Source of the DNA: Dimorphilus gyrociliatus
Taxonomy: Eukaryota > Animalia > Annelida
Reading direction: 5' to 3'
DNA: 64,000 nucleotides
Assembly (NCBI GenBank): GCA_904063045.1
Contig: CAJFCJ010000006.1
Location: 620,001-684,000, forward strand
In this document: piece by piece, positions 35,005-42,979 of the stretch
Numbering within the stretch: the first letter of the stretch is position 1
Layout: every line of letters begins with the position of its first letter
Made by a program: the position numbers and the translations under genes
Notes under the pieces: generated by a model
What the model was told of the DNA's origin: nothing
Databases searched by the model: none
The model's input: only the letters and a program-made list of their open reading frames with translations

Positions 35005-35672
<668 letters not shown>

Positions 35673-36650
35673 TTACAAAATTTATATAGTTTCACATTTA
35701 TCTATACATCACTTATAGTACTACCGTTGAGTGACTGAAGTTCTCAAAATAAGGAAAGGATTAGCTCAAAAAGATTTATCGCAAAATCTATTATTGGCTA
35801 GCTACTGACCTGAGAATTCGCCGCCATTGCTGGTCTAAACTACAACCGTTTTCCGAACAAGCAAAAAAAAAAAGAGTACAAATCAAGCATCCAAATTAAA
35901 TATATCGAAAACAATTTCATTAAATTCGATCTAGAATTCAGATTCGTGGAGAAAAGCATGGGAATTTCTGAAAAATCGTGGAACTTACCGAGCAAAATTT
36001 TCTTAACCAACCCGGAAACTATAAGAACGCGCATGCGTGAAATATCCATTTCCACTACGTCAGCTCATTCTATATATAAAACTGGTAGGTTTCCCGCTTC
36101 TCTCATACGCCTAATTCTGCATAGGACCAATTCAAATCGCAAGAATGATACCTTAAGAATTTATCGAAGGAACTTTTTATTAATACTGAGAAAATTACCG
36201 GTATGAAATGGAAGTTTTAGAATATGGTTCGGGAAGATTACCCTCTTATCTACACAGATCACATCAACGACAAAAATAGGTATGCAAAACGCAAAAATCT
36301 CAGTCTGTCCCTTGTGACGTTAGAGCACTGTGGCGTCAAAAAAATGCTCTTTCGACCTTCTTATAGAAATTCAATTTGGGAAAATATAAGTTGTAACATA
36401 TCGATTTGTGTGTTGTTATATAGGCCTAGGGCTTGCATACTTTTTGCTAACTCAATTTAACAAGTCTAAAAAATAAAATTTTAATGAATTAAGACGTATT
36501 TTCATAGTACGCGCTGATTTTGATTTGAACCTTGAAGAGTGCTTTATAAAAAATTTTGGTAATATCAGGCTATGCGAGAGAGCATTTATCGATTGCGATA
36601 TTGCTATTCTCTGCAGATGTGTTTGACTTTTCTATGTCGACATTAATAGG

Positions 36651-39562
36651 ATGCCAGTGAAAGAAACTACAGGCTACCGCCCTGGATTCCCAAGTTTACC
36701 TTGTACACGTTGGGATAGTGAAAGAGACCAGGTCGATGTGGAATACAAACGCTTTTCTGGGAGAACATCCTGTTTTCAAGGACGAAAAGGCTTGGTTTTA
36801 AAACTTCTACTTTTAGTTGTAATTTTTCTGGTAGGGCTTATTATAGGATACGCCATTCGACGAAAAATTCAACCGATATATGAAGTACACCACTCAAAGC
36901 AACTTTCTATCATTTCGAAAACAAACTTAAATACTTTGAAATCTCACAGTATGATAGATAATCAAATCATCGGCAATCAAATCAGGTATAGCAAACTTGT
37001 TACATTTCTAAACTAAATAAATTTGATTTCTGTTTTTTTAGAAATCTTTCTCAGACAGTTCATTTAACGGCTACAGGAGACAATGTACACTTGGGAAGAA
37101 TTTTACACAGGCAGCTAGTTAGCTATGGACTTGAAGTTATCAGGAAAAATTATTCTGTTTTAGTCTCATCTTTAAACTAGTGAGTTAAATGAAAGCTTTA
37201 TTTATTTCTATCTAAGACAAGCGTTTATTTAAATAGCGCAAAACCTAACAAAATTCTACTTCAGGACTCTACAGGGACAACAGTATTCGCTGGTATGCAA
37301 AATTATATGTACTGTAAATTTATTTTGAATCTTATATTATCGGTTTAACAGTGAAGTATAGGGGGAAAAATGACGAATTTCATGTAGAATACTCTCCTTT
37401 TTCGTCATGGTCCCCTAGTGGAGTAGCATCTGGTAAACCTGTCTATGCTAACTTCGGAAGAGAAAGAGATTTTAGGACTTTGAAAAGTCTTAATATATCT
37501 GTGAAAAGTAATATTGTTATAATCAGATATAAACGGCATTTTCCAACTGCCAGTGCAGTACGAAATGCAGTGGAGAACGAGGCTGCGGGTGTTTTACTCT
37601 ACCCAGACCCCGCACAATTTACAGATATGTTTCATGATCACTTGGAAGCTTATCCTAAAAGTAAATGGCTACCGAGTTGGGCTGTGGTACGAAGTCAGTT
37701 AAGCATTTTTATGGGAGATTTACTAACTCCTGATTTACCAGCTATAAGTAAATTTAAACTAATAACAACAATGTTAATATATTACTGATGAAATGATATT
37801 CCAGCTGGAATGCAAAGAAAGTCGATTGAGGAATGCAAGAACTTACTTCCCTCCATTCCATGCCAACCTATCAGCTTTAGTGATGCTGAGATCCTTCTTT
37901 CGTGAGCATTTAAAATTTTTGTCGACTAACTAAACTTTGTATGAATTTTAGAAATATGGCTGGCTCAAATAATTTCTCAGTCCCAATTGATTTCATAGGA
38001 GGTTTGAATATATCATACAATATTGGCCCAGGATATGATAATGAAAAAAAAAACTTTTCAATTTATATGCAAACAAATAATGAAATGTTAACTAGAAATA
38101 TTTCAAACGTGTTAGCAATTATTTGGGGTTCTGAAGAGTCGGATCGTTATGTTATTATTGGAAATCATTATGATGCTTGGTTGACAGGAGCAGTTGACCC
38201 TATTTCTGGTACGGCAATTTTGCAAGAAATATCGAGGAGTTTGGGGGAGCGCGTAAAATCCGGGTGGAAACCGCGAAGAACTATTATAATTGCTCATTGG
38301 GATGCGGCAATGCAAGGTTACTTAGGTTCAGTTGAATGGATACAAGAATTTAAACAAGAATTAGAACATAATTCTGTTATGTATATTGATGTGAGCACAC
38401 CAGTTACTGGTAGGCTTATAATTATTTCTGTTCCCTTAAAATAAAGGTATAATTTACTCAGGAAATTATACAATGGAAGCAACTGCTAACCCTATTTTAC
38501 ATGAACTGCTATGGGAGAGTTTAAGACAGTCTGAACCCTGGAATAACTCAACTGAAGCAAAAAGTGCATATGATTTATGGTTAAAACGCTGTCGGCTGAA
38601 AGATGAGAGAAACAGGCCTGAGTAAGAATAATTTAGGTTATTTTTATTATAAACAACTTCTGAGTAACACGTACAGAATTTGGAGTTTGGAAAGTAACGA
38701 CTCTGATAGGGATGGTTTTGTTTTTATACTAGGAATACCTTCTTGCCATCTTCAGCTTGCTCCTGAACGGGGTTCTGGTGATGAGTTATTTCCTTCGCAT
38801 ACCACTGCAACTGATACATACAATTATGTTTCCAAATTCGTTGACAACTCATTCATGTCACATAAAAGTTATGCTCAAATTATCTTGGAGATTCTTTTTA
38901 GAACAGCTACAGTTCCCAAACTCCCTTTCAGAATAACCAAACTAGGAAAGTATCTGGAGAAAGAGTACCAAAGACTACAATTAAATATTGAAAGCAAAAA
39001 CTTGCTTCGAAAATTCCCTTTGGGTGAGTCATAATTTATTTAAAACTTTCCTTTCATGAAAACTTTGCATTTTACAACTTATATAGATATATTTCAAAAT
39101 ACTCTCTTAAATTTCATAAAGAGTGCCGAAGCTATAGATTTTGAATTGGAATCTACTCCTGACGAAAGGTTGTTATTTCTAATAAAAAATAGATCTTTAC
39201 ATTATTATTTTTTCAATAGTACCCTAAGAATTAGGCAGTTGAATGATCAACTAATGAGTGTTTCTCGAGCTTTTATATGGTCAGAAGATATTCCAGGTCA
39301 TTTGAAAGGTCAAAGGTAATAACTATCACAAAAACTTACTGACGCCCTCAGCTTTACAAGTTTAAATATTTTTTTATTTTATTTTAGAAACGTCCTATTT
39401 GGAAGGACTTTTCGCGGTAATTCAGTCTTTCCAGGAATTTTCCAAACATTTCATGATTACGTAACCAAAAGTACAGACGAAAATGCTGTAAAAGTCAATC
39501 GACAAATATCGATAGTATCATACTGCTTAAAAGCTGCAGATAGTATCATTCAAATTCATTGA
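36651..39562 (+). CDS. M28B NAALADase/PSMA/transferrin-receptor family type II membrane protein, predicted catalytically inactive (multi-exon)
   Basis: TM segment LLLLVVIFLVGLIIGYAI; PA domain (YANFGRERDF, AAGVLLYPDP); IIGNHYDAW; AVDPISGTA; WKPRRTIIIAHWDA; helical C-domain RQLNDQLM; stop TGA 39560-39562. Confidence 0.85.
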
Positions 39563-40040
39563 AGTATCCTTTCTACATTTGTATATTATCAAATTTGTGC
39601 TTTTATGCCCGCATATTCGTAACTTTTTTAAGTCTAAGTAGATTCTATTCCATATAATTTTAATGTTTAATGTAATACTGTGCATCAAACGCCAAACTGT
39701 ATAGATTTATACTAAACGTTATTAGTTATATTTGGTATAATATTTTGAATAATATTGTCAATCAATTTAGTAAATCAACTCATATTTCAAATTTTTATCG
39801 GAAGCGGAAATTAACAAATGAGAGTTGTTTGAAGTCTATAAAAATACAAGGTACCTAATAAAATTTGATGTATCAAATAAATAAAGAATTCGTTAAGTGG
39901 TATTCTTTTAAATTTATCTAAAATCCTCTTAAGTCTAATTTTAAAAAAATTGTGATTTTATCCCTGAATAGTATTTGTTTATAAAATAGCACCCATTTAC
40001 AACCAACTACGAAAATAAGTTTTAACGGTTTTTAACTAAA

Positions 40041-40724
40041 ATGACCTCTACCCGTAAAGAAACTTTGAAAGATGACATGTCCCTTTCATATTGGACTGAG
40101 CGATGGGAAAATGGAAAGACTGGATGGCATAGAAATGACATAAATCCTGGATTAGTTGACAACGTCGAAAAACTTTTAAATGGCAGAAGTCAGGTGAAAA
40201 TATTCTTTCCTCTTTGTGGAAAAAGTATGGATATGAAATGGATGTATGATCAAGGCCATACTATTATTGGCGTTGAAGGTTTCTCGAAGGCAATTGAAGA
40301 GTTTTTTAAGGAAAATGATTTGGAATACACAAAAGAAGGGAGTGTGTATTCGACCAATGATAAGAGATTGATCATTCACAATCGAGACCTCTATGATTGT
40401 AATGTAGAATTACTAGGAAAGGTAGATGCTATCTGGGATCGTGGAAGTTTTGTAGCTATCAATTATTCTGATAGACCAAAATACATATCTTTAATGCAGT
40501 CATTTTGCACCCGTGAAACTCGATATTTATTGAATACACTGGTTTATGACACCAGTCTATTTAGCGGACCACCACTTTGCGCTACAAAAGATGATATTAA
40601 TAATTTAGTCTCTAGCTGGGCTACCATAGAAAAAGTCTACGAGACAGATGAATTAAATGACCGTTGGCGGGCAATTGGATTGAAATCTTTCATACGAGAG
40701 GTATTCTTAATAATTCCTAATTAG
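40041..40724 (+). CDS. TPMT: Thiopurine S-methyltransferase, intronless
   Basis: WTERWENGKTGWH, IFFPLCGKSMDMKW, AIWDRGSFVAI. Confidence 0.93.
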   Translation: MTSTRKETLKDDMSLSYWTERWENGKTGWHRNDINPGLVDNVEKLLNGRSQVKIFFPLCGKSMDMKWMYDQGHTIIGVEGFSKAIEEFFKENDLEYTKEGSVYSTNDKRLIIHNRDLYDCNVELLGKVDAIWDRGSFVAINYSDRPKYISLMQSFCTRETRYLLNTLVYDTSLFSGPPLCATKDDINNLVSSWATIEKVYETDELNDRWRAIGLKSFIREVFLIIPN

Positions 40725-40909: not shown

Positions 40910-42979
40910 TCAAGCTCGTAAAGTAACCTTTCCCAACATAGGTTTATTGGAAAATTTCAATTTTGTGATATTTTTTTCTAACTCAAAAACAACAACTGTA
41001 TTTTTTCCATTACGTAATAATGGAGCGGGTAGGTAGAGAGTTCTCTGAGGTCCTGCGTTCCAATATTTTCCAAGTAAAAAGTCATTAACCAAAATGATGC
41101 CTTTACCAAAGTCAGATGTATCGATAAAAGTATCTCCTATCTTATCATCCAAATTAAATTCCGTTTTATACAAATTGGGAAGGCTATGATCTACATAACT
41201 CTCTTCATTCGCTATTTTTTCGATGATTTCTTCACTAAAATCGATAACAGTATGCAACCATTTCTTTATCTTAACTCCATCAGCAAAGATCTCCCCTTCA
41301 AGAAAACCTTTGTGTTGAATGTTCAGAACGTTTCCATAGTTAACCCTTCCCATATTTTCCAACAGCAGTTCTATTTTACATTGTTCATTAGCACCACTCA
41401 ATTCTATGATATTAGTAGGCTCCTCACGATGAGTTAAAATCTTTTTTAGCTTTCTATCAACATAAATGTACATTCTATCACGAACAACTCCTTTCAAAAG
41501 CAATTGTTTGGTTGACTTCGGACAATGGCTTTGAAGATGGAGAAATCCGAAAGATTGTCCAGATTGGGAATGTACATCGAGACTTTCCATATTTAACATG
41601 TAATTCGACTTGGTCTGATAATTAGCAAGTTGTCCAATAACTTTTACAAGTTTTGATAGGCTCAAGAAAGGTGTTAAGTCATACGACCTAGGTTTAATTA
41701 CATGAGACTTTGATGGGGGTTCTGGCAGTGGTGTTTGAGAGAGCTTTTCAAGAATACGCCTGATAATAAAAAATTTATTACTAAGTCTTCCATCTTCAGT
41801 TATTGGAGCATCGTAATCGTAGCTGGTTATAGTTGGTTGATAGCCACTCTCAATTGAATGATTGTTTGCACCATTCCAAAACCCAAAGTTGGTACCTCCT
41901 ACCATCATGTAGAAATTAATAGATGCATTATTAGCAATAATAGAGAGCAATTCATGTTCAAATGACTCCAAATTGATAATGTGATGTTTTTCGAACCAAT
42001 GATCAAACCACCCTGTCCACCATTCAGCAACAAATAGAGGACGATCGGGTTGTAACGTTTTTAACTCATTTAAATGTTTTGTCGCTTGTGTCTGAAAATT
42101 TATGGTCATTAGAGTTCCGGGAAGTCTGCTCTTACCAATATCTCCTGAGGAGTCGGACGTAAAAATTAACTCATTTATTCCATAAGTTTTAAACAAAGAT
42201 TTCAGGAAGAGCAAATATGAAGTTTTTTCACTTGGTTTAATACCTCCAACATAAGCGCCGTATTCATTTTCCAATTGAAAAGCTATTATAGGCCCATTGC
42301 CAGTAGAATATTGATATTGAGCTAATAAAGGGAGTAAACGAGAAAAATAACGCGTCACTTTTGATAAAAACTCCTTATTATGACTTCGAAGTTTTATTGT
42401 ACTCTGACGTAATAGCCAAGATGGTAAGCCACCGAATTCCCACTCAGAACAAATATAAGGACCAGGCCTGATTATCATTTTCATCTTTAATTTATGAACC
42501 ATTTTGATAAAATCAACCAGGTTCCAGCGTCCGCCAAAATGAATCATTCCATCATATGGCTCGTGAAGGTTCCAAGGAACATAAGTTTCCACTGTATTTA
42601 GTCCTGCTGCTTGCATTTTAAGAATTCTATCGCCCCACTGTTCAGGTAACGTACGGAAATAATGAAATGCTCCACTTAATATTAAAAATGGTCGACCGTT
42701 TAAATAGAATTTTGAACGGAAGGCAAATAATCTTTTAGGAAGTTTCAAACCATTTACTTCATATGGAAGACATTTTCCATCAACTATCTCGCAACTTTTG
42801 CCCAGAACTGAATTTCGCTCATTTCTTCCGTCATTTTCTTCTAATGTGTCTAATGAAGGCATAGAATGTCTAGAAACCACATGATAAATTAGATAATAGA
42901 TGCATATTAGACAAAACATGAAGCATGTAAATTGCTTAACAGTTAGACGACGAATAAATGCCTTACAAGCAGTCGTCAT
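40910..42979 (-). CDS. GH35 beta-galactosidase (GLB1-like), type II membrane, intronless
   Basis: SGAFHYFR, TYVPWNLHEP, RPGPYICSEWEFGGLP, acid/base QLENEY, nucleophile VAEWWTGWFDHW, TSYDYDAP; N-terminal TM segment. Confidence 0.93.
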   Translation of the reverse strand: MTTACKAFIRRLTVKQFTCFMFCLICIYYLIYHVVSRHSMPSLDTLEENDGRNERNSVLGKSCEIVDGKCLPYEVNGLKLPKRLFAFRSKFYLNGRPFLILSGAFHYFRTLPEQWGDRILKMQAAGLNTVETYVPWNLHEPYDGMIHFGGRWNLVDFIKMVHKLKMKMIIRPGPYICSEWEFGGLPSWLLRQSTIKLRSHNKEFLSKVTRYFSRLLPLLAQYQYSTGNGPIIAFQLENEYGAYVGGIKPSEKTSYLLFLKSLFKTYGINELIFTSDSSGDIGKSRLPGTLMTINFQTQATKHLNELKTLQPDRPLFVAEWWTGWFDHWFEKHHIINLESFEHELLSIIANNASINFYMMVGGTNFGFWNGANNHSIESGYQPTITSYDYDAPITEDGRLSNKFFIIRRILEKLSQTPLPEPPSKSHVIKPRSYDLTPFLSLSKLVKVIGQLANYQTKSNYMLNMESLDVHSQSGQSFGFLHLQSHCPKSTKQLLLKGVVRDRMYIYVDRKLKKILTHREEPTNIIELSGANEQCKIELLLENMGRVNYGNVLNIQHKGFLEGEIFADGVKIKKWLHTVIDFSEEIIEKIANEESYVDHSLPNLYKTEFNLDDKIGDTFIDTSDFGKGIILVNDFLLGKYWNAGPQRTLYLPAPLLRNGKNTVVVFELEKNITKLKFSNKPMLGKVTLRA

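Follow-up and report, generated by a model that had tools for sequence, protein, structure and literature searches.

Gene structure, expression and conservation

The window analysed here is a stretch of 64,000 nucleotides from the annelid Dimorphilus gyrociliatus (contig CAJFCJ010000006.1, positions 620,001 to 684,000, forward strand), and this report concerns one gene on its + strand, at window positions 36651–39562, whose 779-residue product is referred to below as the window protein. A preliminary description of the locus, made by a model from the letters alone, had taken the product for an invertebrate transferrin-receptor-like protein that combines a dead peptidase domain with an endocytic tail motif. 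We confirm what was observed and find partial support for how it was read: the window protein is a new, well supported, catalytically dead receptor-class member of the M28B (PSMA/GCPII/TfR) family, and it belongs to an orthogroup that is widely conserved and uncharacterised.

The window gene is expressed and under purifying selection. Its coding region consists of 11 exons joined by GT-AG introns 50–72 nucleotides long and contains no internal stop codons. Nine of the ten coding introns are present as joints in a single spliced contig from run X2, which dates from 2017 and has no recorded library type, and the tenth is implied by the coordinates of that contig; two coding introns are also seen as joints in contigs of an RNA run, X1, and the joint 38621→38677 is present in both. 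An in-frame alternative acceptor for exon 8 at 38665 was ruled out, as the reads place the acceptor at 38677.

A search of 1.84 billion representative proteins with exon 6 gave as its best match a 152-residue exon reading frame (P0001, 70% identical) on Logan contigs, and the longest of these contigs (L001) carries an orthologue with all 11 exons in the same phases, 779 codons, no indels and 66% identity. Its neighbours are those of the window gene (a Ras-family GTPase upstream, and TPMT, GH35 beta-galactosidase and Kelch protein genes downstream), and the gene order is also kept in a relative's contig, L004. Comparison of the window gene with the L001 orthologue gave a proportion of synonymous differences (pS) of 0.81, at which synonymous sites are saturated, and a nonsynonymous divergence (dN) of 0.23; together these values indicate strong purifying selection. 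Conservation is highest in the cytoplasmic tail, at 87% identity and a dN of 0.09, and in the transmembrane helix; the stalk (residues 68–112) is just 31% identical.

The protein is distributed over the exons, all on the + strand, as follows (database searches were run exon by exon, and exons were joined only for alignments, dN/dS calculations and trees). Coding exon 1 (36651–36985, in the spliced contig) encodes the cytoplasmic tail (residues 1–47), the transmembrane helix and the poorly conserved stalk. It is followed by exon 2 (37042–37179; 82% identical to the orthologue) and exon 3 (37237–37292), both bounded by splice joints, and by exon 4 (37352–37747), which is also defined by joints and holds the PA (apical) domain (Pfam PF02225, 2.6e-6). 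Joints likewise define exon 5 (37805–37901), exon 7 (38462–38621) and exon 9 (39087–39168). The N-terminal half of the M28 protease-like domain lies in exon 6 (37952–38409; PF04389, 1.8e-10), and its C-terminal half, with the start of the helical domain, in exon 8 (38677–39023), the exon whose joint is found in both runs. The TFR_dimer (helical) domain occupies exon 10 (39220–39315; PF04253, 9e-4; 83% identical to the orthologue) and ends, with the stop codon, in exon 11 (39388–39562; PF04253, 4e-4; contig piece from 39387), both matches being below the gathering score.

Upstream of the coding region, a 5' exon ending at 36279 is joined by splicing to 36650 (GT donor at 36280, AG acceptor at 36648–36649). 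Loose ends of transcript contigs map within it, at 36251–36267, and it contains an ATG at 36224 that is in frame with the window protein (36224–36279, + strand); the same reading frame, phase and splice sites are found at 848–904 of L001. Use of this ATG may add 19 residues and give a protein of 798 residues with a tail of 66 rather than 47 residues. Most relatives begin with a conserved "MP", to which the methionine at 36651 corresponds (alignment A1). A short upstream reading frame (ATG at 36204, five codons) lies in the 5' exon just ahead of the in-frame ATG.

Several features around the gene may be noted here. A Rho/Ras-family GTPase exon lies at 35244–35672 (− strand), an apparently single-exon TPMT-like methyltransferase gene of 227 codons at 40041–40724 (+ strand), and an intron-free reading frame of 689 codons for a GH35 beta-galactosidase at 40910–42979 (− strand). 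The AT-rich sequence and introns of 50–70 nucleotides fit a compact invertebrate genome. The intron 7 region (38595–38666) gives weak matches to C/D-box small nucleolar RNA models of Rfam (snoR25, 22.6 bits, E = 4.6; DdR1) that are far under the gathering scores and probably due to chance. Run X1 is a 2024 "coral metagenome" metatranscriptome in which five short contigs are 95–100% identical to the window gene, two of them spliced at the same introns, so a very close relative of the worm lived, and transcribed this gene, in that coral sample.

Domain organization and loss of catalytic residues

The window protein has the M28B organization, with type II topology, an M28 domain with an inserted PA domain, and a C-terminal TFR_dimer domain; it aligns end to end with members of the family and falls inside it in both of the trees described below. 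A hydropathy scan finds just one hydrophobic helix, in the N-terminal region at residues 48–69 (36792–36857, + strand), in keeping with the family's type II topology. The helix ends in the family motif GLIIGY, and G62 and G66 are invariant in the tail alignment (A1). The ectodomain contains ten N-x-S/T sequons.

An active GCPII-type enzyme has five zinc ligands (H377, D387, E425, D453 and H553) and a general base (E424), and its S1' site recognizes glutamate through R210, N257, K699 and Y700. These numbers were transferred to the window protein by alignment to goat GCPII (750 residues, as human PSMA), the numbering of the two being assumed to match. Only two metal ligands survive, H413 (38166–38168) and D423 (38196–38198), which correspond to H377 and D387 and lie together within 38166–38198. 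At WDAAMQG (38298–38318) the general base E424 is replaced by A460 and the zinc ligand E425 by M461; at YIDVS (38382–38396) the ligand D453 is replaced by S489; and at FPSHT (38789–38803) the ligand H553 is replaced by T589 and Y552 by histidine. A GSGND-like stretch was rejected as the D453 site, since the goat GCPII alignment places D453 at the aspartate of YINAD. The preliminary description had given these three motif changes and the two surviving residues, and the alignment bears out each of them; it had the residues of WDAAMQG right and placed them three nucleotides too far downstream, at 38301–38321.

The general base and three of the five zinc ligands are thus gone, as the term "dead peptidase" had implied, and all four S1' residues are replaced as well (R210, N257, K699 and Y700 by T, Q, F and R, respectively). 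From what is established about the M28 mechanism, these residues can neither form a two-zinc centre nor carry out general-base catalysis. The L001 orthologue has WDAAKQG at the WDAAMQG site.

The long-tail orthogroup and its cytoplasmic tail

The Glu-Glu pair formed by E424 and E425 is kept in 127 of the 150 best representatives. Those without it include mollusc proteins of a clade that runs through the whole phylum (bivalves, gastropods, cephalopods and a chiton), which have WDA[AST]KYG and are automatically annotated as "NAALAD2-like", hemichordate proteins with WDAKEYG, echinoderm proteins with WDAGEDG or WDAGDDG, and a centipede protein with WDAKEFG. A protein atlas search returned generic family names only.

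We built two trees, the first with IQ-TREE under the posterior mean site frequency (PMSF) approach from 60 sequences and the second with three more relatives added. In the first tree 32 sequences form a bilaterian orthogroup (SH-aLRT, the Shimodaira–Hasegawa-like approximate likelihood ratio test, 98; support 94 in the second tree) that excludes vertebrate GCPII/NAALAD2, NAALADL1 and the ordinary invertebrate GCPII-like group. We call it the "long-tail" orthogroup and define it by a tail module (below) together with the supported clade; the window protein has the module and lies in the clade. The window protein is therefore not the isolated TfR look-alike that the preliminary description had envisaged, and mollusc members of its orthogroup were already in the databases under the "NAALAD2-like" name. 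Within the orthogroup a lophotrochozoan clade (support 98) contains the window protein, and the second tree splits this clade into Owenia, nemerteans, molluscs and a five-member clade (support 99) made up of the window protein, the L001 orthologue and three transcripts, all without E424. The branching of the lophotrochozoan clade suggests a single gene in each phylum. No catalytic residue is missing in Owenia, two nemerteans, amphioxus, ticks and millipedes, and mapping on the tree indicates that the Glu-Glu pair was changed at least three times within the orthogroup.

The nearest full-length relatives of the window protein, three Logan transcripts, show graded decay of the active site: P0423 is without the general base only (glycine in its place), P0206 is additionally without D387, D453 and H553, and P0425 is without D387, D453 and H553 and has a degenerate tail. 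Outside the orthogroup, the Glu-Glu pair is also missing from P0046 and P0052 (Logan), P0126 (Dermacentor), P0069 (Penaeus), P0061 (Centruroides) and P0023 (Pycnogonum), M28B proteins with motifs such as WDAGKFG, WAAGQMA, WGAGEFG, WSASLYG and WDANLYG; such cases indicate that catalytic loss is common among arthropod members of the family.

The tail module, which all orthogroup members have in common, reads [Y/x][ST][RK][WFY], an acidic stretch, N[IV]D[IV][ED], Y-x-x-x, a variable linker and [FL]SG[RK]KG, followed directly by the helix. It is absent from ordinary GCPII-like proteins, PSMA and NAALADL1, a regular expression written for it matched 84 sequences, and it is kept across molluscs, annelids, nemerteans, arthropods, hemichordates, echinoderms and amphioxus. 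In the window protein the Y-x-x-x position is YKRF (36744–36755, + strand, as first described), a YxxPhi motif (Phi, hydrophobic residue) that follows the acidic stretch and is a candidate sorting or endocytic signal. The first tail motif, Y[ST][RK][WFY], has degenerated to CTRW (36702–36713, + strand) in the window protein and lost its tyrosine, as the alignment (A1) and a motif table show.

We estimate roughly that a lone YxxPhi would occur by chance in about one in three tails of 47 residues, so it is conservation rather than presence that gives the motif meaning. The preliminary description had made its interpretation hang partly on such conservation, which proved to be strict: YKRFSGR is unchanged in the L001 orthologue, and each of the 58 module-bearing lophotrochozoan sequences has a YxxPhi at the YKRF site (58/58). 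The variants at this site are YKNL, YRHF, YRNL and YRSL in molluscs, YKKV in Owenia, YRQM in the nemertean Tubulanus, and YKRV and YQRM in the nearest relatives of the window protein. The tabulated amphioxus and arthropod sequences have no YxxPhi at the YKRF site and keep the tyrosine of the first motif (YSRW, YTKW), and the tail scan and alignment show YSRF at the first motif in echinoderms. The two tyrosine motifs are thus complementary, every protein having at least one Y-x-x-hydrophobic motif, and this pattern is good evidence, at the level of sequence comparison, for a functional tyrosine signal. The Glu-Glu-retaining orthologues of Owenia and the nemerteans also carry the YxxPhi, so the signal is older than the catalytic loss, and the idea that the two arose as one coupled, TfR-style change does not hold.

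Relatedness to TfR was judged from the scores of depth-matched profiles against PDB entries. A profile of 30 orthogroup sequences scores 430 bits against the TfR1 ectodomain, 769 against GCPII and 667 against NAALADL1, and a profile of 30 ordinary invertebrate GCPII-like sequences scores 336, 920 and 779 bits, respectively. When only 12 Glu-Glu members of the orthogroup are used the values are 382, 743 and 670 bits, compared with 320, 919 and 754 bits for 12 sequences of the ordinary group, so the preference of TfR1 is not due to dead active-site columns. TfR1 is the sole solved family that prefers the orthogroup profile, by 61–94 bits, and a bacterial outgroup (2ek8) scores equally across the four profiles (82–92 bits). 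The best PDB match of a profile of the tail plus helix is full-length TfR1 (7zqs_B), at a non-significant E = 0.45; most of this score comes from the helix, and YTRF lies beyond the aligned part. We take the profile scores as a moderate indication, short of proof, that TfR descends from, or is sister to, the orthogroup. The preliminary description had left the choice between a convergent and an ancestral receptor; for the scaffold the scores suggest "ancestral", and the catalytic loss itself is specific to the lineage.

A broader reading, which we offer tentatively and regard as possible rather than likely, is that the long-tail orthogroup is the invertebrate counterpart of the lineage that yielded the vertebrate transferrin receptors (and perhaps NAALADL2). 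The YTRF signal of TfR1 would then come from the first tail motif, Y[ST][RK][WF], which has the form YSRF in echinoderms, YSRW in amphioxus and the degenerated CTRW in the worm; the trafficking tail would be far older than transferrin binding, and catalysis would have been lost repeatedly.

Candidate function and comparison with known family members

In vertebrates the PSMA family includes catalytically dead proteins (TfR1, TfR2 and NAALADL2), and TfR has been treated as a vertebrate invention. We think it likely, though by no means certain, that the window protein is a surface pseudo-peptidase of the M28B family that cycles between the surface and endosomes as a receptor. We infer a type II, N-glycosylated and probably dimeric surface protein with apical, protease-like and helical domains, whose ectodomain would bind some ligand without cleaving it and so act as a non-enzymatic binding protein. 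Its tail module (the acidic stretch, YKRF, and GRKG beside the membrane) would engage AP-2 or AP-1 clathrin adaptors for sorting and endocytosis, and the protein would thereby move between surface and endosomes.

Some points weigh against a receptor of this kind. The TFR_dimer matches of exons 10 and 11 are under the Pfam gathering score when the exons are scored singly, and the retained H377 and D387 may bind one metal ion. The YxxPhi is a short motif that could instead serve in basolateral or lysosomal sorting or as a site of tyrosine phosphorylation. The same tail is present in Glu-Glu orthologues, which makes it a trafficking feature of the orthogroup and no mark of receptor function. This last point is the strength of the main rival explanation, a non-endocytic role in which the window protein is a surface adhesion, scaffold or signalling protein whose tail serves polarised sorting or phosphotyrosine signalling without ligand uptake; we also note that the acidic stretch before the tyrosine resembles, in our reading, sorting signals that are not of the AP-2 type. 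We nonetheless consider such a role rather unlikely, given that the YxxPhi is strict in all of the lophotrochozoan tails and is replaced, where it is absent, by a second Y-x-x-aromatic motif, as expected for an adaptor-binding signal.

An iron-uptake role is possible, but we judge it improbable that the window protein corresponds in function to the vertebrate transferrin receptor and binds a transferrin or ferritin. The profile preference of TfR1 and the best, non-significant match of the tail profile point in that direction, and invertebrate NAALAD2-like proteins of sponges and a clam have been speculated to stand in for TfR (PMC7034838, PMC12896564), although the clam protein seems, by its short tail, to belong to the ordinary GCPII-like group. 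Against it, exon 6 is much nearer to GCPII/III (117–128 bits against PDB entries; GCPIII 2e-36) and NAALADL1 (117 bits) than to TfR1 (59 bits, 6e-15); exon 8 (query 38666–39022) matches NAALADL1 only (4.6e-8); no iron-responsive element was found by Rfam at E ≤ 10 within 35700–40100 (the gene and its flanks); and the catalytic loss is lineage-specific, Owenia and nemertean orthologues keeping Glu-Glu. It is still less probable that the protein is a hydrolase acting through other residues or a single metal ion: H413 and D423 supply two of the three ligands of one PSMA zinc site, but beyond the loss of the general base, the other three ligands and the four S1' residues, the orthologue, P0206 and P0425 have differing residues at the catalytic positions (e.g., Met or Lys at 425), which indicates that constraint there has been lost. 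That the gene is decaying, or is an artefact of annotation, is barely credible in view of a reading frame intact over 11 exons, a spliced transcript, and an orthologue without indels at saturated synonymous divergence and a dN of 0.23.

The analysis describes an invertebrate orthogroup in which catalysis was lost at least three times and a trafficking tail was conserved, and it names a set of annelid, mollusc, echinoderm and hemichordate genes in which ligands of pseudo-peptidases can be sought. Judging by the profile scores, the window gene may belong to the invertebrate lineage closest to the vertebrate transferrin receptor; if the signal between the orthogroup and TfR1 is true, tractable invertebrates could be used to study how the transferrin receptor and its YTRF signal arose.

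The closest known counterparts of the window protein are the mollusc "NAALAD2-like" proteins, which lie in the same lophotrochozoan clade, carry the tail module, in which YKNL or YRHF stands in the place of YKRF, and have lost E424, E425 and H553, the two glutamates within WDA[AST]KYG. They differ in keeping D453, and overall identity is about 35%. The mollusc and window clades are joined with support 89 in one tree and form a polytomy in the other, which bears on whether the catalytic loss was shared or parallel. We found these mollusc members as database entries only, with no study of them in the literature, and our literature search found nothing on catalytically dead invertebrate M28B members.

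PSMA, GCPII and GCPIII (FOLH1, NAALAD2) share the type II topology and the three ectodomain domains and give the best PDB matches. PSMA is, however, an active two-zinc enzyme with a different cytoplasmic tail, whereas the window protein belongs to another orthogroup and has replacements at four of the six catalytic residues and throughout the glutamate pocket. NAALADL1 is the sole PDB match for exon 8 and has an exon 6 score about equal to that of GCPII, but it differs in being an active aminopeptidase whose tail is very short, and both trees place it in a clade of its own. NAALADL2, the inactive vertebrate member of the family, which we take to be another type II M28B protein without catalytic residues and for which we know of no ligand, has a much longer cytoplasmic part of about 120 residues, compared with 47 in the window protein. 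The best 120 matches of full-length word searches include neither NAALADL2 nor TfR and list GCPII, NAALAD2, NAALADL1 and invertebrate proteins. TfR1 (TFRC) is, like the window protein at the level of sequence, a catalytically dead M28B member with a YxxF motif in its cytoplasmic tail. The two differ in that pairwise similarity is low (exon 6 as given above, no match to TfR1 for exon 8, and no PDB match at all for exon 1 alone), that no iron-responsive element was found in the window gene, and that the catalytic loss of the window protein is independent of that of TfR.

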